From sequence record LR756501.1: a stretch of DNA of 64,000 nt; one strand, given 5' to 3'. Each line of letters starts with the position of its first letter. Positions within the stretch are counted from its first letter, which is position 1. Positions 1 through 54,096 of this stretch are shown one piece after another. A program made the translations under genes and the position numbers. Under the pieces are notes generated by a model. That model searched no databases. It was not told the origin of the DNA and saw only the letters and a list, made by a program, of their open reading frames with translations.

Positions 1-1291
1 CAACAACAGTCTTTATAATACCTCTCCTTATACCCTTCTCTGATAAAAGTTCTACCAACTTCTCTTGCTTAACAATTTTCTCACCTAATTTATCAAACGC
101 TTTACTGTATTTAATGTTTTCACTTTCAAGTAGTTCCACATTTCTATTTAATTCTACGATAGATACTGAATCTGTATTTCTATCGTATTCGTTTCTAAGG
201 TCTTTAATTTTATCTTTAAGGTAATCAAATCTAATCTCTTTTTGATTAAGTTCGTTCATTACTTGTTTTCTTTCATCTACTTTGGCTGATACTTCTATTC
301 TAACTTCGTTGTAACTCTTTTTGAGTTCTATTAAACTATTCTTAGCTTCTTCGTATTCTTGAAGAAGTTTTTTAAGTTCTTTGTCGTGAAAATCGTCTGT
401 TAGTACAGAACCACAGAAAGGGCAACTGCCTTCTTTGAATATATCAATCTTCTTACTTAACTCACCTAATAAGAATTCGTCTTCTGTAATTTTACTTTTC
501 TTAATATTATAAATATCACTTTTACTTCTTATCTCTGGTATTAACCCACTAACAACCTCTTTCAAATCATTTATATCATTCTTTAACGGTATGAATTCAG
601 TCTTATATCCTGTAATTTCTTCTTTAATCTTCTGTTTATCAATACTTCCACTGTTCTCTAATATGATTTGAACGTTATTTTTATAAGTTCCTATTGTATT
701 TGTATTTGTAAGTATGAGTGATTCTAATTTTTCTTTTCTTTTATATGAGTTCTTTAATAGTTCTTTAGCGATGGATAAATAACTATCCATTTCATCTATG
801 TTAAATAATTTATTAAGAAGTTTCTTTTTAGTTTCAGTATCAAGATTAATGAAGTTTGCGAAGTCAGCCAGGTTGAGGGATACAAGAGATTTATAAGTAT
901 TATATTCTATACCAATTATATCATCTTTTTCTTGTTGTTGCATAACTTCATATCTATCAGTTCTATCTGCGCCGTTGATAGATATTTTGAAACCTTTAGG
1001 TGTAAGTCTTCTGTTTATAATAACGTTATCGTTGTTCCAGTTAACAAAATCAATTTCAGTTTCGAGATTTTTATTGGTTCTATTGGGTAGGATATAGTTA
1101 GGAACTCTTTTGGTATTTTTACCTCTAACTATATTAAAGAGGGCAAAGTCAATAGACTCAAGGAGGCTGGACTTACCTTTACCGTTGGTACCAGTAAGCA
1201 GAATAAGTGAGCCTTCTTCTGAGAAGGTTAATTTTTGTAAGTTATTACCATAACTTTTGAAGTTTCTTAACGATATTGAGTTTATTATCAT
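1..1291 (-). CDS. T4 gp46/SbcC/Rad50-like recombination nuclease ATPase subunit (partial, runs off window start)
   Basis: Missing from ORF track; translated by hand from ATG at 1291: MIINSISLRNFKSYGNN..., Walker A GTNGKGKSS, long coiled coil, zinc hook GSCPFCGS. Confidence 0.9.
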   Translation of the reverse strand, partial: MIINSISLRNFKSYGNNLQKLTFSEEGSLILLTGTNGKGKSSLLESIDFALFNIVRGKNTKRVPNYILPNRTNKNLETEIDFVNWNNDNVIINRRLTPKGFKISINGADRTDRYEVMQQQEKDDIIGIEYNTYKSLVSLNLADFANFINLDTETKKKLLNKLFNIDEMDSYLSIAKELLKNSYKRKEKLESLILTNTNTIGTYKNNVQIILENSGSIDKQKIKEEITGYKTEFIPLKNDINDLKEVVSGLIPEIRSKSDIYNIKKSKITEDEFLLGELSKKIDIFKEGSCPFCGSVLTDDFHDKELKKLLQEYEEAKNSLIELKKSYNEVRIEVSAKVDERKQVMNELNQKEIRFDYLKDKIKDLRNEYDRNTDSVSIVELNRNVELLESENIKYSKAFDKLGEKIVKQEKLVELLSEKGIRRGIIKTVV

Positions 1292-1550
1292 TTAATACTT
1301 TATCTATTAATTCTGTTCTAGTTTTATTTTTCCATTCACCAACCGAAATTAAACATTCACCTTCCCAACCACATTTACATGTATAATATATTTTAACTTT
1401 AGATGTTAAATTAAAAATGTAATCAACTGATCCACAAGACGGACAAACGTAATCTTCATTCTTAGCTAATACTGAATAACTTGTAAAAGTACCATCCGTC
1501 CACTCTTCGGGTTTATGTTTATTTAGCATACTATAATAGTCAAATTCCAT
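1245..1550 (-). CDS. Small Zn-ribbon protein with RTxLIDxxL motif
   Basis: CPSC...CKC; KTRTELIDKVL; its 3' end overlaps the gp46-like start. Confidence 0.7.
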   Translation of the reverse strand: MEFDYYSMLNKHKPEEWTDGTFTSYSVLAKNEDYVCPSCGSVDYIFNLTSKVKIYYTCKCGWEGECLISVGEWKNKTRTELIDKVLNDNKLNIVKKLQKLW

Positions 1551-1785
1551 CTAACACCTTGTCTATTAATTTTGTTCTCTTAATATTCTTATATACATTT
1601 TCATTCATTAATTCATTTCCAACGTGTCCACATCCTAAACATTCGTAACTACTTATAACATGAATTTTTACGTTGTCTCTTATTTCTTCCTTACTTTCGA
1701 ATTTCCATTCAGTAGATCCGCAAATAGGACAAACACTACCTACCATACCAAATATTTCAGCGAATAAATTATATTTTTTCTTCAT
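1540..1785 (-). CDS. Small Zn-ribbon protein with C-terminal RTxLIDxxL motif
   Basis: CPIC...CLGC; KRTKLIDKVL. Confidence 0.75.
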   Translation of the reverse strand: MKKKYNLFAEIFGMVGSVCPICGSTEWKFESKEEIRDNVKIHVISSYECLGCGHVGNELMNENVYKNIKRTKLIDKVLDGI

Positions 1786-2053
1786 TTAATACTTTATCTA
1801 TTAATTCTGTTCTTAATATGTTTTGAGTTTCCTCGGGGGTGTAAAAATGTTCGTATCCTTCTTGTTTTGAAAATACCCAATCTGGACCAGTTTTTTGTTT
1901 TATTAAAGTTGATCTATGATTAGGTAATCCCATTGATACAGCACCAGAATCAATATATTCAAATTCAACATCGTATAATTCACCTACTGTTAAAGGGAAA
2001 TAACATTTTCCCTTATAAAGTTTTTCATATGATTTTTTACACAAGGATTTCAT
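1769..2053 (-). CDS. Hypothetical protein with C-terminal RTxLIDxxL motif
   Basis: LRTELIDKVL; overlaps neighbours in a tightly packed array. Confidence 0.7.
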   Translation of the reverse strand: MKSLCKKSYEKLYKGKCYFPLTVGELYDVEFEYIDSGAVSMGLPNHRSTLIKQKTGPDWVFSKQEGYEHFYTPEETQNILRTELIDKVLNEEKI

Positions 2054-2318
2054 TTAGTGCTCTATCTATTAATTTTGTTCTTTTAGTGTTTTTAAATTCT
2101 TCTTCTGTATTAATAAGTTCACGATACTCACCGACCCATTTACATTCTGGGCAAGAGGTTGGGACTTTATCATAAATCCAATCACCTTTTTCATTTTTTT
2201 CTGTCGCTGGGTCTATAAATGTTGTTTCTTTTGAAAAACAATTTGGGCAATATTTACCAATCCATCCTCTAGTCGACATACCTTCTTCTGTTTTTCTATC
2301 TCTCCAATAACATATCAT
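2037..2318 (-). CDS. Small Zn-ribbon protein with C-terminal RTxLIDxxL motif
   Basis: CPNC...CPEC; KRTKLIDRAL. Confidence 0.75.
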   Translation of the reverse strand: MICYWRDRKTEEGMSTRGWIGKYCPNCFSKETTFIDPATEKNEKGDWIYDKVPTSCPECKWVGEYRELINTEEEFKNTKRTKLIDRALNEILV

Positions 2319-2541
2319 CTATTAATTGTGTTCTTTTTCTACACAACATTTCATCTCTATGCAACATGTCTCTATATTCACCTTCCCAATCACAATCATG
2401 ACAATTCACAATGCTACCGTTTTGAGTCTTAAAAAAATCATTACCTAAACAAATAGGACAATATTTGAAATGTCCAACAATTTTCAACATAATTTTCTTA
2501 TGTTCCATATTTATATTTCTCCAATAAACTATAAATAACAA
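2296..2541 (-). CDS. Small Zn-ribbon protein with C-terminal RTxLIDxxL motif
   Basis: CPIC...CHDC; KRTQLIDDML; true start probably the internal MEHKK. Confidence 0.7.
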   Translation of the reverse strand: MLFIVYWRNINMEHKKIMLKIVGHFKYCPICLGNDFFKTQNGSIVNCHDCDWEGEYRDMLHRDEMLCRKRTQLIDDMLLER

Positions 2542-3076
2542 AAGCGTGTCCCATTTTCATGTTAGGATCGTTACAAACCTCTGTTAAATTTTTACCCATT
2601 TCAATATGATTATAACCGTCAAAATCTATCAAATAAATATCTTTCTTTGTAGTACGATAAATCTGTAAAAGTTGTTTAAAAGCTTTCGTTTTTATACAAC
2701 CCCTTGCATATATTGGTATATATATCTTCTTCCTAGCTTCTATGTAAGTTAACTTTTCACCGTCCCACCACGAGTAAAGTGGTTTAACTCCTTTACCCAT
2801 TGGGTACCTGTGAGCGTAACTATCATTCCAAATTCTTTGCGCCCAAAGGAAATAATCTTTGGTTGGTGTGCCGTTGTTATCGTGTTGAGCGTAGACTTTA
2901 CTGGCTTGCCAAGCGTTTTCTACGTTTTTAGCGTAGTATTTACCGTAGAGATGACCACCTTCTATTATGAATGGAGAAAATCCTTTTGTCCAATTATCAC
3001 TTCTAGATGTGGTATCTATAATGATTGCTGTATCTGGCAATCTATCTTTGTTCCAATATTTTTCTACATATAACAT
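2498..3076 (-). CDS. NADAR/DUF6939-like protein (putative ADP-ribose-processing fold)
   Basis: FSPF...NVENAWQASKVY motif resembles the ExxWQxxK motif of NADAR-like proteins; recalled, not searched. Confidence 0.45.
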   Translation of the reverse strand: MLYVEKYWNKDRLPDTAIIIDTTSRSDNWTKGFSPFIIEGGHLYGKYYAKNVENAWQASKVYAQHDNNGTPTKDYFLWAQRIWNDSYAHRYPMGKGVKPLYSWWDGEKLTYIEARKKIYIPIYARGCIKTKAFKQLLQIYRTTKKDIYLIDFDGYNHIEMGKNLTEVCNDPNMKMGHAFVIYSLLEKYKYGT

Positions 3077-3498
3077 TACTTTAACATATTGTCTATCAAC
3101 AATGTTCTTTTCATATTTTTTATTTCGTCTTTATCCATGAACATGTGTTCACTTTTAAAATAGTAAGTCCAAGGTCTTCCAAAAGTTATAACTGGATAAG
3201 TTGTACCTATTGGTACATTTTTTCTAGATTCCTTTTCTTTTGTTACAACTGAAAATTTTAATATTATATTATTCTTATATTTAATATTATAACCATATCC
3301 AGTAAATCCTTTAGATATAAGATCTTCATGTGTTATTTTATTATAAAAAAACACAGGTAATAATTTAACAAATTCTTTATTTCTCCAAGTTATTCTCCTT
3401 AACTCTTTAAGAAGAGCAATTTTTACCTCTACTGTATCATTAATGTCTATAAAATCTGGGAAAGCCTTTAAAAATTTAAAGTAGTCTATTTGTTTCAT
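3076..3498 (-). CDS. Hypothetical protein with C-terminal RTxLIDxxL motif
   Basis: MKRTLLIDNMLK at C-terminus. Confidence 0.7.
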   Translation of the reverse strand: MKQIDYFKFLKAFPDFIDINDTVEVKIALLKELRRITWRNKEFVKLLPVFFYNKITHEDLISKGFTGYGYNIKYKNNIILKFSVVTKEKESRKNVPIGTTYPVITFGRPWTYYFKSEHMFMDKDEIKNMKRTLLIDNMLK

Positions 3499-4266: not shown

Positions 4267-4305
4267 CGTACAGAGGCTACTTTAATATATAAAGATAAAA
4301 GCCAT

Positions 4306-4726: not shown

Positions 4727-5073
4727 GCCCACTAGCACATTTTCCGGGAGGACCAAGATATTGGGGTGATGCCCAGATATACTTAAATCCAATAGTTTTA
4801 TGTTTCGATAATAAAGAATGCGATAAATTATTGAAAATTGAAATACCAAATCCAATAGATAAAAAAACTTCATCAATTAAAGCGTCTTTTAAAGAAGATG
4901 ACGAAATGAGAAATACTCTTTTAAAAGAAAATCCAAAGGATTTAAGAATAGAATTCTATGATAGAGAAGGTAAAACTATAAGAATCATTTACATGCGAGA
5001 ATGTAAATGTGTTGAAATGCCTAATAACGAGGTTGAAATTCAATTAGAATCTTGGGAAGATAAATATTTTTAA
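4723..5073 (+). CDS. Divergent tail-tube (gp19)-like protein
   Basis: IEFYDREGKTIRIIYMREC resembles the YxRxG...hxhxGxxP strand pair of T4 gp19-like tubes. Confidence 0.4.
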   Translation: MSPLAHFPGGPRYWGDAQIYLNPIVLCFDNKECDKLLKIEIPNPIDKKTSSIKASFKEDDEMRNTLLKENPKDLRIEFYDREGKTIRIIYMRECKCVEMPNNEVEIQLESWEDKYF

Positions 5074-5351
5074 TCTAAAGTTAAATCTCTAACGTCATCT
5101 TCGACTTGATCGTAAAAATCTGGATATTCGTCTTCTATAATAGATAGAATTTCGTCTGCTTTATCCATTCTATAATCTAAGTCGTCACTTCCAAGTAATT
5201 TATCTAATTTCTTGTCTATACTCTTGTTTTTCAGAAGTTTAAAGAATCTGATTATATTACCGTCGTATTCTATTTCACCTGACCATTTTTCTTCACCGTA
5301 AGGGTCTAGTTCGCTTTTATCTGCGTTTTCGTTAAATTTCTTTATTTTCAT
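5070..5351 (-). CDS. Hypothetical protein with CTS-like N-terminus and DPYGEExW motif
   Basis: MKIKKFNEN...ELDPYGEEKW. Confidence 0.75.
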   Translation of the reverse strand: MKIKKFNENADKSELDPYGEEKWSGEIEYDGNIIRFFKLLKNKSIDKKLDKLLGSDDLDYRMDKADEILSIIEDEYPDFYDQVEDDVRDLTLD

Positions 5352-10719: not shown

Positions 10720-11559
10720 GTGAAGAATTATAAACAATTCGTAAACGAATATTACACATGGGATGATGATGTTACTGAAAAAACAATAGATCTTGGTGTT
10801 CTCTATGAACAACAAGAGGGAAACTCTGATCACATATTGCAAATTTTACAATATGAATTTAGACCAATACAATCAAATGATGAATATAAAGTTATCAATT
10901 TAGTCGGTAAGTATAGTAAAGTTAATTTAACATTGGATAATCGTGCGCAATATCCCGGAGGTATAGAAATGGATGAAAAAGGACTCCTATTCTCATCAAG
11001 ATTAAGAGACAGATTAACATTCAGACGTTTAACATTTGATCTTTTTCCCAGATTTCTTTTTAAAATTAAAATATTAAAAAGAAGATTTATCCCTGAAGAT
11101 CCATATGGAGAAGAAGAATGGGATATAAATGAATCCTATTATCCAGATTTATCACCATATAATTATAGTTGGGAGATGCCTGAGTGTGTTAATATTGGTT
11201 GGCTAGATGATAAACACGATTTTGAAAAAGGCGAAGTTCCTGAAGGTTTTGTAGATAAGTTGGTAAAAATGCCAAGGTTTGTACAACATTGTGGTTATCA
11301 CAATTGTCCATTCTGTGAAGGCGGAAGAGATACATGGAGCAGTAGTATTAAATTGGCTATAGGAGACGGTGTAGTTTACCTTTTCCCAGAATTGACGAAG
11401 CACTATATATCTAAACATCATTATAAACCACCACAAGAATTTATTGACGCTGTATTAAAAATGGAAAATATGTCTGATGGTGATGCCCATAGATACATGA
11501 ATAATATCATGTTAAGACATAAGGAACATTTTGATAAAATGTTCCATAGAAAGAGATAG
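10720..11559 (+). CDS. Two-module protein: unknown N-domain, DPYGEEEW linker, paralog of 10269..10706
   Basis: VNIGWLD...GEVPEGF...HCGYHNCPFC...HYISKHHYKPPQEFIDAV shared with the upstream gene. Confidence 0.75.
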   Translation: MKNYKQFVNEYYTWDDDVTEKTIDLGVLYEQQEGNSDHILQILQYEFRPIQSNDEYKVINLVGKYSKVNLTLDNRAQYPGGIEMDEKGLLFSSRLRDRLTFRRLTFDLFPRFLFKIKILKRRFIPEDPYGEEEWDINESYYPDLSPYNYSWEMPECVNIGWLDDKHDFEKGEVPEGFVDKLVKMPRFVQHCGYHNCPFCEGGRDTWSSSIKLAIGDGVVYLFPELTKHYISKHHYKPPQEFIDAVLKMENMSDGDAHRYMNNIMLRHKEHFDKMFHRKR

Positions 11560-15787: not shown

Positions 15788-16360
15788 ATGTTAACGAAAT
15801 TTGAATTATTTTTGGAAGGTAAATGGTTTGGAGGCGGTAGAGCAGCAAAGGCTGGCCCTAATGCTCCAGTTGTTGTTCCTAATCAAGAGCAAGCAAAGAA
15901 AAAAGTTTACGATAAACCAGATGATGATATAATAGAATGGATGATTAACTATCTTAAAAAGACTGGTGTTGATGAGACAAAATTAACTGATGATTATAAT
16001 TTATCTCCAAAAACTTTTGAACCTAAACAATGGTGGGAATATAAATTTATAAAACAAGGAAAGACTAATCCATTGGATCCTTACGGTGAAGAAGATTGGC
16101 CAGGAGCTACTGGTAATAAACAGATTAATATAAGAATAGAAAAGAGATCTCTACTTGGTGACAAATATGAATATTATTATAGGTTCAAAGTTAATGATAA
16201 TGATTTAGATGTATCTGAAAAATATATTAAAAGAATAGTAGAATTACTTGACGCCCCAAAAGAAGCAAGAAGGTTGGCGAGAGAAAAAAGGGAGGCTGAA
16301 GCTAAGAAATCCAAGAATGACGCAATAAGAAGAGATTTATTTGAAAAAAGATCGAAATAA
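15788..16360 (+). CDS. Hypothetical protein with CTS-like N-terminus and DPYGEEDW
   Basis: MLTKFELFLEG...LDPYGEEDW; TAATATATAG at 15774-15783. Confidence 0.75.
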   Translation: MLTKFELFLEGKWFGGGRAAKAGPNAPVVVPNQEQAKKKVYDKPDDDIIEWMINYLKKTGVDETKLTDDYNLSPKTFEPKQWWEYKFIKQGKTNPLDPYGEEDWPGATGNKQINIRIEKRSLLGDKYEYYYRFKVNDNDLDVSEKYIKRIVELLDAPKEARRLAREKREAEAKKSKNDAIRRDLFEKRSK

Positions 16361-16687: not shown

Positions 16688-16738
16688 TTAAAACAAATTT
16701 CAATTATTAATATATAAATAAAAAAGGAGAAACAAACA

Positions 16739-17122
16739 ATGTCGTAGATTTACAAATTAATCGTAGTAACAAGACAAGATCTTACCCCTGGCTATCAAGC
16801 CACACAGGCAACTCACGCCGCATTATTATTCGCACAAGAATTTCCATAGATTTATGAGCAGTGGTCAAAAGACCCTTATTTAGCTTTGCTTTCTGTTAAG
16901 AATGAGCAAGAGCTTCGTATTCTCATATCCAAATTAGAAAAATCCAAAATCAAATTTTCAGTATTCAGGGAACCTGATATTAACAATCAGATTACCGCTA
17001 TCTGTATTGAACCTTCTGAAGCATCCAGAAAGGCTACTAGCTCTTTGCCCCAAATGTTAAGAGACTTGAAGACTGAGAATCAGATTGATAAAAATAATTA
17101 CGTAAAGGAGGAAGTATTATGA
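16739..17122 (+). CDS. PTH2-fold (peptidyl-tRNA hydrolase 2 / PTRHD1-like) protein with two in-frame amber codons
   Basis: AAAAGGAGA SD, ATG 16739; MS*IYKLIVVTRQDLTPGYQATQATHAALLFAQEFP*IYEQWSKDPYLALLSVKNEQEL...FREPDINNQITAICIEP; TAG at 16745-47 and 16847-49, in frame with track ORF 16886..17122. Confidence 0.82.
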
Positions 17123-19147: not shown

Positions 19148-19172
19148 TTTGTGGAGTGAAATTCTCCACAAA
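19148..19172 (+). promoter_or_regulatory. Perfect 9-bp hairpin abutting the first tRNA, overlapping a TAnnTTTG element
   Basis: TTTGTGGAG-TGAAATT-CTCCACAAA; TATATTTG at 19144-19151. Confidence 0.6.
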
Positions 19173-19173
19173 T

Positions 19174-19246
19174 CCCTCGTTAGCTCATTTGGAAGAGTGT
19201 CAGATTCTAGCTCTGACGGTAGTAGGTTCGAATCCTACACGGGGGT
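19174..19246 (+). tRNA. Amber suppressor tRNA (anticodon CUA), copy 1
   Basis: Acceptor CCCTCGT/ACGGGGG, D arm GCTC/GAGT, anticodon arm TCAGA-TTCTAGC-TCTGA (CTA at 19207-09), T arm GTAGG-TTCGAAT-CCTAC. Confidence 0.9.
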
Positions 19247-19251
19247 CAAAA

Positions 19252-19326
19252 CGGATAGTAGCTTAGCCAGGCCAAAAGCATCGGTCTCTAAAACCGATAT
19301 CGAGGGTTCAAATCCCTCCTATCTGA
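19252..19326 (+). tRNA. Amber suppressor tRNA (anticodon CUA), copy 2
   Basis: Acceptor CGGATAG/CTATCTG, D arm GCTT/AAGC, anticodon arm TCGGT-CTCTAAA-ACCGA (CTA at 19288-90), T arm GAGGG-TTCAAAT-CCCTC. Confidence 0.92.
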
Positions 19327-19418
19327 CTAAAAATAATCACCCTGATTATCAACGTCTTCTTACGTTTGCCCCCATTTTAGAAAAAACTAGTAAAAAAGTT
19401 TAATATATACTCAGGTAT

Positions 19419-34233: not shown

Positions 34234-34947
34234 CTAAATATATTCTATTTTCCACCCTTTATGGGCATTAGATTTTCCGCAAAGAACGTAACAAACATTT
34301 CTTCTGCATAAATTGTGATCTTCACAGAATTGTTTAACTGAATGTTCCTCGATGTAAATATTACCATCCGGATCAGTAAATCTAACAGGTCTAACTGTGG
34401 AGTTTGTAACTTTTTTTAAACTTTCAATTCTTTTCTTTTTATGTTCTTCTGACTGTTTCTTGCCTTTCAAATGATCATTTTCTTTCTTCTTTAAAGACAT
34501 TTTAATTTTAGATTCATCTGAATGGTGGAAATTCAGCTTTTTATGTGATTCTGATATATTTTTTTTATGTTCTTCTGTTAAATTTTGACCTCTATTCCAT
34601 CCCATTTTTAATCTAGATTCATCGGATGGTGGAACATAATCCCATTCACTTGCTCCACCTGGTTTTATATTATAACCCTTATCTGTTTGAGTGGTTTCAA
34701 ACTTTATGATATATTCTTTTTCTTTTTCATTTAATAGATATTCAGGAAATTCAAATTCATCAATTTTGAATCCATCTATTCCATATTTTTTAATGGCCCT
34801 ATGAAATGGAAGTTTGCTTCTTTTAACATCTTTAACGTGATCCTTTATTCTCTCATCAACAGTTCTTCTTGTTTGACCTACATATTTTTTATTATTAGTA
34901 AGATTTGTAGCCAAATATATAAATCCAATTTTATTACATATATCCAT
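34234..34947 (-). mobile_element. Free-standing GIY-YIG homing endonuclease with NUMOD3-type repeats
   Basis: GFIYLATNLTNNKKYVGQT...GYNI; TEEHKKNISES, SDESKIKMS, SEEHKKK repeats. Confidence 0.9.
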
Positions 34948-40764: not shown

Positions 40765-41388
40765 TTATCTGTGTTTAGATTTATATCTGTAAGAATCAAA
40801 GGCTGATTTATCCATTGAATGTTCGTCATCTAATGGTGGTTCGTCTTCTGTTGTTAGGTATTTATATCTATCACTTTTTCCTTTTTTTCTTAGTTCAACG
40901 TATTCAGATCTTTTATTTTTTTCTAAATTAATTAAATAGTTAGCAATAGTATTTAAATCTGGTTTCCCATCATAAATTCTATTTTTAAATATCTTCTTTT
41001 TACCTCCGATTGTAACAGTAACTATATTTTTATCTGGGATAAAGAAAATACGTTCGTCTTGGTCTTCATTTCCAGTTAAATACGTCCAATAATATTCACT
41101 ATTACTATCATATGTTCCTATTCCTTTATCATTCCATAATTTTGCGCCTCTGATTGAGTAATAAAAAACTCCTACATCTTCACAGAATTTTTCAAATTCG
41201 CTGTAAGACATATTCAAAGCGGCACAAATTTCTTCTTGATCTTTTTTTCTTTTGTAAGCCCCTTTATTCACATTAAAAAATGGTTCATCTGGATCTTTTA
41301 CATTAGGTCTTGGATTAGCCCATGAAGTATCATTGGTTGATTTAACTTTGAGGAATTTATATTCTTCGTTTGTCTTAACGTGGTTCAT
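40765..41388 (-). CDS. Hypothetical protein starting MNHVKTNEE (paralog)
   Basis: Shares MNHVKTNEEY and NVKDPxEPFF with 39654..40748. Confidence 0.75.
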   Translation of the reverse strand: MNHVKTNEEYKFLKVKSTNDTSWANPRPNVKDPDEPFFNVNKGAYKRKKDQEEICAALNMSYSEFEKFCEDVGVFYYSIRGAKLWNDKGIGTYDSNSEYYWTYLTGNEDQDERIFFIPDKNIVTVTIGGKKKIFKNRIYDGKPDLNTIANYLINLEKNKRSEYVELRKKGKSDRYKYLTTEDEPPLDDEHSMDKSAFDSYRYKSKHR

Positions 41389-41472
41389 ATGTCTGGATAT
41401 TATTTTTTATGTATATATTAATTATATTTTTTGATTTTTTTAATTTAATATATAAAAGAAAAATATAATTCA

Positions 41473-46630: not shown

Positions 46631-46649
46631 ACCATTATATATAAAAACA

Positions 46650-46714
46650 AAAGGGGGAGAAAATCTTTCGATCTCTCCCCCTTTAAATTAAAACCTCACC
46701 CACTTGGGATGAGG
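46650..46714 (-). terminator. Two tandem hairpins downstream of the tmRNA
   Basis: CCTCATCCCA-AG-TGGGTGAGG-TTT and AAAGGGGGAGA...TCTCCCCCTTT on the minus strand. Confidence 0.7.
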
Positions 46715-46722
46715 AAATTAAG

Positions 46723-47337
46723 TGGACCCGCAGGGATTCGTGAAATACTATTAATTTCTTAATAGACTAGACTATATCATCAACCATTACTGGTTGTTGG
46801 GAGCTTATGTGGTTATTAAGAAGACTATACTTCTCCACTAGTCGTTGAACCTTCATAAAGTGTACTCTATGCTTGGCTGCTGATTGCCATATATCTTACG
46901 ATACTTAGGGTTCCAGCAATTCACCCAATTTTCACATCTATGTTACCATAGAAGTGGTCCGATTTATCAAACCCTGTTCCAACAAAACTTTTAAGAAATG
47001 TACTACAAGTTTATTTGATTTTTCTGAATCAACAAAATATTAAGTTTGATAGATCTAACTTAAAAACCCCGAATCCGTTATGTTTAAGAACTCCCAACGG
47101 AATTTATCAAATGGAGTTTAACTGAATTTTGCTTCGGCTTACGCTAAAACAAGATCTTCGACAAAAGATTCAGTTGCAACTTTGCCTGTCAAAGAAGTTG
47201 GGATACTCATCATATCCTCAGCGTTCATTTTATAGTCGCCATTTATTGTTTACCTACATATTTATTAATCGTATTATAGACATTACGATACTTGCAATTT
47301 CGCTATTACACATTGCTGTCTAAAGCCTGTCGAGCCC
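46723..47337 (-). ncRNA. ssrA: tmRNA (one-piece) interrupted by a group I intron
   Basis: 5' GGGCTCGACAGG; 3' CGGGTCC-A giving G3:U70 and A73 Ala identity; T stem CAGGG/CCCTG; ATAAAT resume context and tag frame 47139..47240 ending VLA*. Confidence 0.92.
46741..46969 (-). mobile_element. Group I intron (229 nt, no ORF) in the tmRNA T-loop
   Basis: P AATTGCTGGAA, Q AATCAGCAGCC, R GTTCAACGACTAG, S ATGATATAGTCT, P9 CTATTAA-GAAA-TTAATAG; P1 GGUU/GACC with U.G at the 5' splice site. Confidence 0.9.
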
Positions 47338-47444
47338 ATATCTTCAAAGAACGTTTTATTGTGAAATTTATATATTGTTTATTTATACCCTGTTTTTTCC
47401 ATTTTGTTTTACAAAGATATAAATAATTTTTCAATTAAAAAAAT

Positions 47445-51008: not shown

Positions 51009-51026
51009 AAAATAAGTAAATATGAA

Positions 51027-51572
51027 GTGAAAAGATACAAAGAACTAAAGTTCGAAGACAAAACATATACTGAAGCTTATAAGATTGATGAAATCCTCGT
51101 CAAGAATAAGTTTGAATGGTTCCTTGATTGTGAGGTAGAAAACGCCAGAATAGAAATTCTTAAAAACACTTTAGTGTTCAACTCAGGTGTATTCTTCAAT
51201 GGTACATGGGTTTACGGTGTTTTCAGAGACGGTCAGTGGAAATATGGAACATGGGAAGGTGGTGTTTGGTATAATGGAACTTGGTACAACGGTATCTTTA
51301 AAAACGGTATCATCTTCGGTGGTAGATTTATTGCAGGTAAAATAGAAGGCGGTGAAATTAGAGGCGGTGAAATATTTGACGTTCAAATTAGTCAAGACGT
51401 CGTAAACAATACCATATCTAAAATGGAACAACCAAAGAAAGCACAAAAAGGAGAACCCCAAAATAGGGGAGTACAACAAAAAGAACCTCAAGCAGAATTA
51501 CCACAGGTAATACAACCTGAAAAAATAGAAGAATCTCACAGAATTAAAAGATTTAACGAATATGCAGGATAA
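51027..51572 (+). CDS. Protein with Gx(W/F)xx pentapeptide repeats (beta-helix-like)
   Basis: SGVFFNGTWVYGVFRDGQWKYGTWEGGVWYNGTWYNGIFKNG. Confidence 0.75.
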   Translation: MKRYKELKFEDKTYTEAYKIDEILVKNKFEWFLDCEVENARIEILKNTLVFNSGVFFNGTWVYGVFRDGQWKYGTWEGGVWYNGTWYNGIFKNGIIFGGRFIAGKIEGGEIRGGEIFDVQISQDVVNNTISKMEQPKKAQKGEPQNRGVQQKEPQAELPQVIQPEKIEESHRIKRFNEYAG

Positions 51573-53615: not shown

Positions 53616-54096
53616 ACCCCTCAAAAGACTTCACTATATTTTCCTTTTGTGTACCACCCATAGCACATTGATATGCGTATTTTGTTGGTGGCCATTCTAA
53701 TACAATACCCAACTGTTTCATTGTTTCTGTTATATTTACACCCATAGCCTCAGGTCCAGTAGTAACAACAAGATCAGGATGTTCCTCTTTAAACTCTTCT
53801 ATATTTTTCTTTAACTGTGCTCTTGCTGTTCCTTGCCAGTAAAGTACACATCTTAACTGGTAATCAGTCCAATCTGGATGATTGGATCTTGTTTTTTCTA
53901 TGTGCTTACCAATATCAAATCTATTCCATATCATATAGAGTGGTTTAGTAGTATCAAAGAAATCTTCTAACTTTGGAAGTTTTGGGGGACATTTATCCTT
54001 ACCCCAATTAGGACAACCTTTTGGATGATTATGATAAGGTTTTCTACATAAACCTCTAACCGCGTAATCTATAACTGGATCTACTCTAGCGTACAT
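53560..54096 (-). CDS. DUF2284-like predicted metal-binding protein
   Basis: GLC...GCPNWG...CPP, PEAMGVNITETM. Confidence 0.72.
   Translation of the reverse strand: MYARVDPVIDYAVRGLCRKPYHNHPKGCPNWGKDKCPPKLPKLEDFFDTTKPLYMIWNRFDIGKHIEKTRSNHPDWTDYQLRCVLYWQGTARAQLKKNIEEFKEEHPDLVVTTGPEAMGVNITETMKQLGIVLEWPPTKYAYQCAMGGTQKENIVKSFEGFNHIFRTRSYGQVQFLSI

Follow-up and report, generated by a model that had tools for sequence, protein, structure and literature searches.

The 735-kb huge phage genome LR756501.1, which otherwise uses the standard genetic code, carries two in-frame TAG codons within a single small gene whose product has a predicted PTH2 fold, and two tRNA genes with the matching CUA anticodon lie 2.4 kb downstream on the same strand. 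An early in-frame stop codon is present in all of 61 representative relatives of this gene, and a same-strand suppressor tRNA accompanies 27 of the 31 representatives with enough flanking sequence. This pairing gives phage suppressor tRNAs a clear target gene. We analysed a 64,000-nucleotide stretch, referred to here as the window, which is 100% identical to the last 64 kb of the unannotated 735,411-bp record LR756501.1 of an uncultured phage (Al-Shayeb et al. 2020, PMC7162821); that paper does not mention suppressors. The features of the locus are as follows.

16707..16717 (+), promoter-like motif TTAATATATAA, 21 nt before the ATG.
16724..16730 (+), Shine-Dalgarno sequence AAGGAGA, 8 nt before the ATG.
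16739..16747 (+), the gate, ATG TCG TAG, with the amber codon at codon 3 (16745-16747).
16748..16846 (+), piece 1, 33 sense codons predicted to hold strand beta-1 (KLIVVTRQDL) and helix alpha-1 (YQATQATHAA) of the PTH2 fold.
16847..16849 (+), second in-frame amber codon, codon 37.
16850..17122 (+), piece 2, 90 sense codons plus the TGA stop (17120-17122), predicted to hold the rest of the PTH2 fold with the invariant FREPDINNQITAI..EP motif.
19174..19247 (+), tRNA-CUA 1, an amber suppressor (C1-G72, U73, G37; no encoded CCA).
19252..19327 (+), tRNA-CUA 2, an amber suppressor (C1-G72, A73, A37; no encoded CCA).

The first-pass annotation of this locus was made from the sequence alone, and each of its sequence statements proved correct. 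A Shine-Dalgarno sequence precedes ATG-TCG-TAG, a second TAG lies in the same frame, both TAG codons are followed by ATT-TA, and the conserved N-terminal third lies upstream of the longest standard ORF, which starts only at TTG 16886. The terminal TGA overlaps the ATG of the next gene (17119) as ATGA. The motif TTAATATATAA had been labelled a late-type promoter. It is a genuine recurrent element, with 8 exact copies in the window against 0.66 expected (none of 100 shuffles reached 8), and all copies are intergenic, co-oriented with and just upstream of a gene start. Among the related loci that we collected, numbered L001 onwards, the same motif precedes the homologous gene in L001-L004, L008 and L011, and the Shine-Dalgarno sequence is conserved in L001-L003. 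Nevertheless, all of the genes behind the motif are of unknown function, so that no timing class could be assigned from them and the late-type label is not supported.

Scanning the whole genome with TAG read either as a stop or as a sense codon, we found that the non-overlapping ORF set covers 0.890 of the sequence in both cases, with a stop usage of 680 TAA, 172 TGA and 40 TAG. A codon-score scan for coding sequence on both sides of an in-frame TAG returned 43 candidates, which on inspection were antisense frames or TAG terminators followed by the start of the next gene. One candidate was left unresolved, an HNH endonuclease whose TAG is followed by 86 in-frame codons with no ATG. As a control, a 20-kb stretch of the code-15 phage Lak-B5 rises from 0.526 to 0.889 when TAG is read as sense, with 57 internal TAG codons. 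The phage therefore uses the standard code, and the gated gene is essentially its only amber-interrupted gene, the only clear case found in 735 kb. The flanks of related loci are also standard-code. Additionally, TAG-terminated genes of this phage show no extra backup stops, which were sought as a sign of life with suppression (median 10 codons against 9 and 8; p = 0.76).

ARAGORN identified only two tRNA genes in the window, both with the anticodon CUA, whereas the other 57 tRNA genes of the phage lie in three arrays more than 300 kb away. Rfam confirmed both as full-length canonical tRNAs, with 57.8 and 63.8 bits, respectively, against a threshold of 29, and found no other RNA family, such as theta ribozymes, between 16 and 20 kb. 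ARAGORN labels them tRNA-Pyl, a class characterized by a small D loop without GG, a 3-nt variable loop and a 6-bp anticodon stem. However, both align end to end with the general tRNA model and show a 5-bp anticodon stem, a GG-containing D loop and a 4-5-nt variable region; thus, the label only reflects the CUA anticodon. To assign tRNA identity, they were compared with the other tRNAs of the phage, to which they are at most 70% (tRNA-CUA 1) and 75% (tRNA-CUA 2) identical, so that no close relative was found. Orthologous pairs occur in L003.

A comparison with PTH2 profiles and structural models had been proposed in advance as a check on the identity of the product, and its outcome supports the PTH2 fold. 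The two pieces, searched separately, match the Pfam PTH2 profile (PF01981) collinearly at positions 1-31 (13.1 bits) and 42-103 (16.8 bits), each below the gathering score of 23 bits; the joined read-through protein was not submitted, and by this measure the gene of the window is placed neither inside nor outside the family. Piece 2 has 32 homologues. Relatives with only the N-terminal gate give an uninterrupted domain behind it, and these score 27.3, 29.7, 32.0, 39.9 and 35.9 bits. A profile of 56 such pieces, searched against the PDB, hits archaeal Pth2 structures at 3e-9 to 7e-6 and human Bit1 at 2e-5. The AF2 model of the closest uninterrupted relative, L004 (62% identical to piece 2), has a pLDDT of 91.7, and in it the segment corresponding to piece 1 forms E4-9 and H14-31. 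The top 14 Foldseek hits of this model in the PDB all belong to the Pth2/Bit1 family, with TM 0.56-0.77 and E down to 9e-7; its only significant PDB neighbours are Pth2 and Bit1 structures, and the TM values are 0.70-0.77 to the Pth2 structures 2zv3, 3erj and 1xty and to Bit1.

The family is divergent, and while we regard the fold as established, the activity is not. The catalytic residues of characterized Pth2 reportedly include, from work on Sulfolobus Pth2, a Lys in the GKGK loop and the Asp of the DAG motif. In the profile alignment to 2zv3 and 1rzw, the GKGK loop falls in a gap, and the Asp of the 'RDAG' motif aligns with an invariant Glu in FREPD; the loop is missing, and 'RDAG' is replaced by the invariant 'FREPD'. 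A conserved acidic residue remains, so that catalysis is possible but not assured; hydrolysis of peptidyl-tRNA was not assayed. A further hint ties the family to tRNA 3'-end chemistry. In Tenacibaculum phage pT24 and in L006, L198 and L203, the gated PTH2 domain is fused to a roughly 190-aa HD-like domain with invariant HD...H...H...D...H residues, whose AF2 model has a pLDDT of 94.8. Its best structural neighbours are class II A/CCA-adding 'tRNA processing enzymes', at TMq about 0.6 and E = 4e-3. The same domain also stands alone beside pairs of tRNA-CUA genes, although a tblastn search gave no hit to it in the 735-kb phage.

Whether TAG is kept while other sites drift, and whether CUA tRNAs co-occur, had been set out beforehand as the comparative test of the amber gate, and homologs with sense codons together with other signs of decay, or assembly errors, as what would speak against it. 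Loci were collected from IMG/VR, from JGI and ENA metagenomes (the best 80 of 246 relatives), from MAG contigs and from GenBank phages. Some database homologues, which read MSQIYK...EFPQIYE, appeared to carry a Q at both sites, which might have named the inserted amino acid, but their DNA has TAG at both places and the Q is an artefact of code-15 gene calling. Among 61 representatives under 90% identical to one another (about 50% mean identity), the early in-frame stop is TAG in 60 and TAA in 1. It is codon 2 in 4, codon 3 in 30, codon 4 in 9, codon 5 in 15 and codon 10-11 in 3 of them, and it always lies 1-8 codons before the first beta-strand (KLxVVTRRDL). The base after the stop is always a purine (A 48, G 13), and the next codon is ATT in 40. 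Behind the gate these genes use CAA 305 times, CAG 70 times and TAG 0 times, so TAG is not a general Gln codon here. None of the 61 has ATG, GTG or TTG between the gate and the first strand, and no conserved RNA structure that might stimulate read-through was predicted at the gate. A second, independent IMG/VR scan gave the same picture, and the four largest curated huge phages all have the gate.

The second TAG is kept in L001, L002, L003/L163, L172 and L177, at the same alignment site in L170 and in the distant L012/L183, while L161/L162 carry a second TAG at another site. Relatives with a sense codon at this site have E, D, H, K, V or T. Both TAG codons are kept in relatives whose synonymous sites differ by 20-58%, which is more than chance. 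Against L001-L003, the 33 codons between the two TAG codons show a pN/pS of 0.06-0.26, with a synonymous divergence of 0.22-0.58, while the part after them shows 0.13-0.37 (pS 0.2-0.58 overall). The inter-TAG segment is thus in the same regime of purifying selection as the remainder, indicating that it is translated in this frame; no expression, proteomic or tRNA-charging data were available, and read-through is inferred from conservation only.

Of the 31 representatives with at least 1.5 kb upstream and 1.9 kb downstream, 27 carry a suppressor tRNA, always on the same strand as the gene, with offsets clustering at about -130 nt (immediately upstream of the gate) and at +350 to +1300 nt. The other 4, and three of the largest phages, show no suppressor tRNA within 3-5 kb. 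The only TAA-gated gene (L011, ATG ACG TAA GTA) lies beside a tRNA-UUA, although this copy also has a mid-gene frameshift and the covariation rests on this single locus. L168 pairs a TAG gate with a tRNA-UUA, which can read UAG by wobble. More distant, ungated relatives still have a suppressor immediately after the gene, namely CUA at +303 to +313 in L178, L181 and L183, UCA in L185 and UUA in LR745208, while in Lak-B5 a tRNA-UUA lies about 600 nt upstream of the gene. The linked suppressor tRNAs are very diverse, with 67 unique sequences in about 25 unrelated backbone clusters at 65% identity, too diverse to assign the inserted amino acid, which may differ between phages.

Based on these results, we propose with fairly good confidence a two-part translational lock, in which a presumed hydrolase of the ester bond between tRNA and a peptide or acyl group is made only when the linked suppressor tRNA outcompetes RF1. 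Without a charged, functional tRNA-CUA, host RF1 would end translation after Met-Ser and no enzyme would be made. With it, the full protein would be made at a rate proportional to the product of read-through at the two TAG codons, and the amount of enzyme would track the balance between suppressor tRNA and RF1. Since the tRNA and the gate are adjacent and co-oriented, the gate would add little timing information, but rather information on whether the tRNA is processed, charged and winning against RF1. What our data show is the gate and its conservation, the lack of any alternative start, selection on the gated segment, the tRNA linkage, the PTH2 fold and the standard code elsewhere in the genome; full-length protein requires decoding of TAG at codon 3 and codon 37, and the phage supplies cognate tRNAs next door. 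The competition with RF1 and the need for the enzyme in proportion to suppression are our inference. The usefulness of this coupling is not shown, and we lean towards a feed-forward clean-up role, most simply the recycling of peptidyl- or aberrant acyl-tRNAs that accumulate when ribosomes pause at or read through stop codons. The N-terminal position of the gate was probably favoured because any inserted amino acid is tolerated there, which fits the diverse tRNAs, and because the aborted product is harmless.

The interpretation given in the first-pass annotation is thus supported in part. Gating by amber read-through, the PTH2 fold, the conservation of both TAG codons, the co-occurrence of CUA tRNAs and the standard code elsewhere all hold, whereas it did not recognize that the tRNA and the gated gene form a conserved, physically linked module. 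Its proposal that the unsuppressed Met-Ser minigene causes peptidyl-tRNA drop-off, like the lambda bar minigenes, so that the locus makes Pth substrate when off and Pth when on, is not supported and appears unlikely. The gate is indeed very early, at codon 2-5 in 58 of 61 representatives, the range in which drop-off is frequent. However, the pre-gate peptide varies from 1 to 10 residues with 18 different last sense codons, and one locus appears to read ATG-TAG directly, with no elongator tRNA to sequester; bar toxicity depends on starving one rare tRNA, and nothing here points to a particular tRNA. Its suggestion of a feedback sensor was not tested, nor was the direction of any such feedback.

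A serious, though tentative, alternative is a governor in which the gating is the same but the PTH2-like enzyme strips the amino acid or peptide from the suppressor tRNA itself, so that more suppression makes more enzyme, which lowers suppression. Such a negative-feedback loop would set the level of amber read-through. The adjacency and co-orientation of gate and tRNA, often within about 130 nt, are typical of a self-contained loop rather than a timing cascade, ungated family members also sit directly beside CUA, UUA or UCA suppressors, the divergent active site leaves room for a different substrate, and a second TAG, which steepens the response, has arisen in several lineages. Nevertheless, there is no evidence on substrate specificity, the diversity of the linked tRNAs argues against recognition of one specific tRNA body, and relatives in mycobacteriophage tRNA arrays have no clear suppressor partner. 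In a related and equally tentative reading, the tRNA and the gated gene would form a self-contained circuit that measures and sets the level of stop-codon read-through in the infected cell, the tRNA licensing synthesis of an enzyme that acts on the suppressor tRNA or on its by-products, and such single-gene recoding would be the first step from which whole-genome code change (code 15) evolves in phages.

It is also unlikely that ATG-x-TAG is a tiny upstream ORF after which ribosomes re-initiate at a non-canonical codon without suppression. ATT, a rare bacterial start codon (as in infC), follows the gate in 40 of 61 representatives, and termination-reinitiation at overlapping or adjacent codons is common in phages. 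However, the other 21 have AAC, GTT, GTA, GTC, AGC, ATA or GGC, none has a canonical start before beta-1, and the TAG at codon 37 cannot be bypassed in this way, yet the segment before it is under purifying selection. Moreover, this model does not explain the linkage to suppressor tRNAs or the TAA/UUA pairing, nor the use of TAG in 60 of 61 gates when TAA is by far the commonest stop in these AT-rich phages. General recoding of late genes, as in code 15, could be suggested by the presence of tRNA-CUA genes, by the rarity of TAG as a terminator (4.5%) and by the translation of some relatives under code 15 by gene callers, but it is contradicted for this genome by the identical coding coverage under both codes and by the behaviour of the Lak-B5 control, and is very unlikely. 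Finally, a pseudogene or assembly error might be suspected from two stops inside a short gene and from the frameshift in L011, but it is refuted by the recurrence of the same stops in independent assemblies from many samples and in manually curated genomes, and by purifying selection on both sides of the TAG codons.

These results supply a specific, conserved target gene for suppressor tRNAs of standard-code phages, which have had no known targets. They show a natural key and lock made of a tRNA and one gene, a minimal and portable example of expression control by genetic-code manipulation, and they tie a translation-quality-control enzyme family to stop-codon suppression, which suggests what recoding costs the cell and how phages pay for it. 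They also offer a plausible intermediate between standard-code and fully recoded phages. The module is directly testable, since Tenacibaculum phage pT24 is a cultured carrier; its gate, ATG AAA TAG ATA, is at positions 2953-2964 of the locus L113, and an annotated tRNA-Sup lies 2.5 kb upstream on the same strand. Its annotated CDS starts only at 3088, 129 nt too late, illustrating that standard gene callers truncate or miss this gene, while code-15-aware callers silently write Q at the gate.

Phage suppressor tRNAs, whole-genome TAG recoding, PTH2-like genes in mycobacteriophage tRNA arrays and orphan CUA tRNAs in jumbo phages have been described. In contrast, full-text searches found no description of a stop-gated PTH2 gene linked to a suppressor tRNA within the literature covered, and searches on PTRHD1 and Pth2 found nothing that bears on phage function. 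In the recoded Lak and crAss-like phages (code 15; Ivanova 2014; Borges et al., preprint 10.1101/2021.08.26.457843; Peters et al., PMC9523058), a phage-encoded tRNA-CUA also reads TAG in phage genes inside a standard-code host, and the genomes are likewise low in GC and poor in TAG terminators. However, tens to hundreds of mostly late genes carry in-frame TAG codons there and code-11 coding density collapses, whereas here one gene in 735 kb is recoded, always the same gene family, at the same N-terminal place and next to the tRNA. The Borges preprint contains neither 'hydrolase' nor 'PTH'. The standard-code jumbo Xanthomonas phage XacN1 (PMC5852040) carries two tRNA-CUA genes, for which its authors searched for target genes and found none; its own PTH2 domain is the C-terminal part of a 279-aa protein with no gate beside the domain, so that this case remains open.

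Archaeal and eukaryotic Pth2 (PF01981; PDB 2zv3, 3erj, 1xty, 1wn2; human Bit1 1q7s) share the fold and the R-x-D-L and Q..HA motifs with the phage family, but the sequence identity is only 18-26%. The PTH2-like genes in the tRNA arrays of cluster C mycobacteriophages (PMC5966550) belong to the same protein family (35-42% identity by tblastn) and are also embedded among phage tRNA genes, but they are annotated as uninterrupted and no suppressor partnership has been described, Myrna showing only a weak, doubtful tRNA(cta) call. The lambda bar minigenes likewise connect a very short ORF with peptidyl-tRNA hydrolase biology, although the features that define bar toxicity, a fixed two-codon ORF whose last sense codon sequesters one particular tRNA, are not conserved here. 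In prfB (RF2) autoregulation, as in the gated gene, an early in-frame stop codon (UGA in prfB) makes the yield of a translation-factor gene depend on how efficiently that stop is decoded, and the governor described above would be analogous to it in logic. In prfB, the product itself reads the stop and escape is by a +1 frameshift, whereas here, where no ORF containing the class I release-factor motif GGQH[VI]N exists in the genome, escape is by a separately encoded suppressor tRNA and the product is a PTH2-fold protein, not a release factor.

In addition to the gated gene, we identified a possible second amber read-through gene in this phage, located outside the window at positions 185104-185661 (-) of the LR756501.1 record, corresponding to 38107-38676 of L017, a segment of the same record. 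At this site, an HNH endonuclease ORF ends in TAG and is followed in frame by 86 codons with a positive coding score and no ATG, and the ORF lies next to a tRNA array. A search of the tail against PHROGs found nothing. Where the PTH2-like gene family itself ends in TAG, as at the end of the gene in the related loci L061 and L074, a TGA follows as the very next codon, forming a tandem stop, which fits with TAG being leaky in these phages. Additionally, an SmpB-like ORF (MKNKLSIKNKKAFFNYEI...) was found near position 199,994 (-) of the record, also outside the window; therefore, the phage carries other ribosome-rescue functions besides the PTH2-like gene.

The motif TTAATATATAA occurs 8 times in the window, against 0.66 expected, at positions 4282, 5807 (-), 13581, 16707, 20378, 36564 (-), 41445 and 55988. 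Every copy lies 5-166 nt upstream of a gene start and is co-oriented with it; the motif is probably a phage promoter class of unknown timing. Other features observed in the window are as follows:

1245-2556 (-), an array of small paralogous zinc-ribbon ORFs sharing the pattern CPxC ... C.C.WEGEY.
5070-5351 (-), 10969-11559 (+) and 15788-16360 (+), and also near record position 553798, a 'DPYGEE.W' motif that recurs in several otherwise dissimilar ORFs.
19151-19169, a perfect hairpin, GTGGAG-N7-CTCCAC, directly in front of tRNA-CUA 1, which may be a terminator of the preceding gene or a processing signal.
34234-34947 (-), a GIY-YIG homing-endonuclease-like ORF, terminated by TAG.
1-1244, 40830-41472, 46631-47444, 51009-51561 and 53616-54096, stretches of 480-1240 bp without an ORF of 50 aa or more in an otherwise tightly packed genome, in which no tRNA was found.

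In Mycobacterium phage Myrna (L114), the PTH2-like gp84 starts in the context GTG TAG GTG (1480-1488), and ARAGORN calls a weak tRNA(cta) with a poor D arm just downstream (1972-2043), which the record annotates as tRNA-Ser. This arrangement may or may not be a degenerate version of the same module. A further domain was observed in a set of loci comprising Tenacibaculum phage pT24 (L113), L006/L193, L198 and L203; the phages XacN1 and RAS14 (L111/L112); and L196 and L205. This HD-like domain, of roughly 190 aa, is fused to the gated PTH2 domain, sits N-terminal to it in XacN1 and RAS14, or stands alone beside pairs of tRNA-CUA genes, while it is absent from the 735-kb phage. The domain has an invariant HD...H...H...D...H pattern, and its best structural neighbours are class II A/CCA-adding enzymes.
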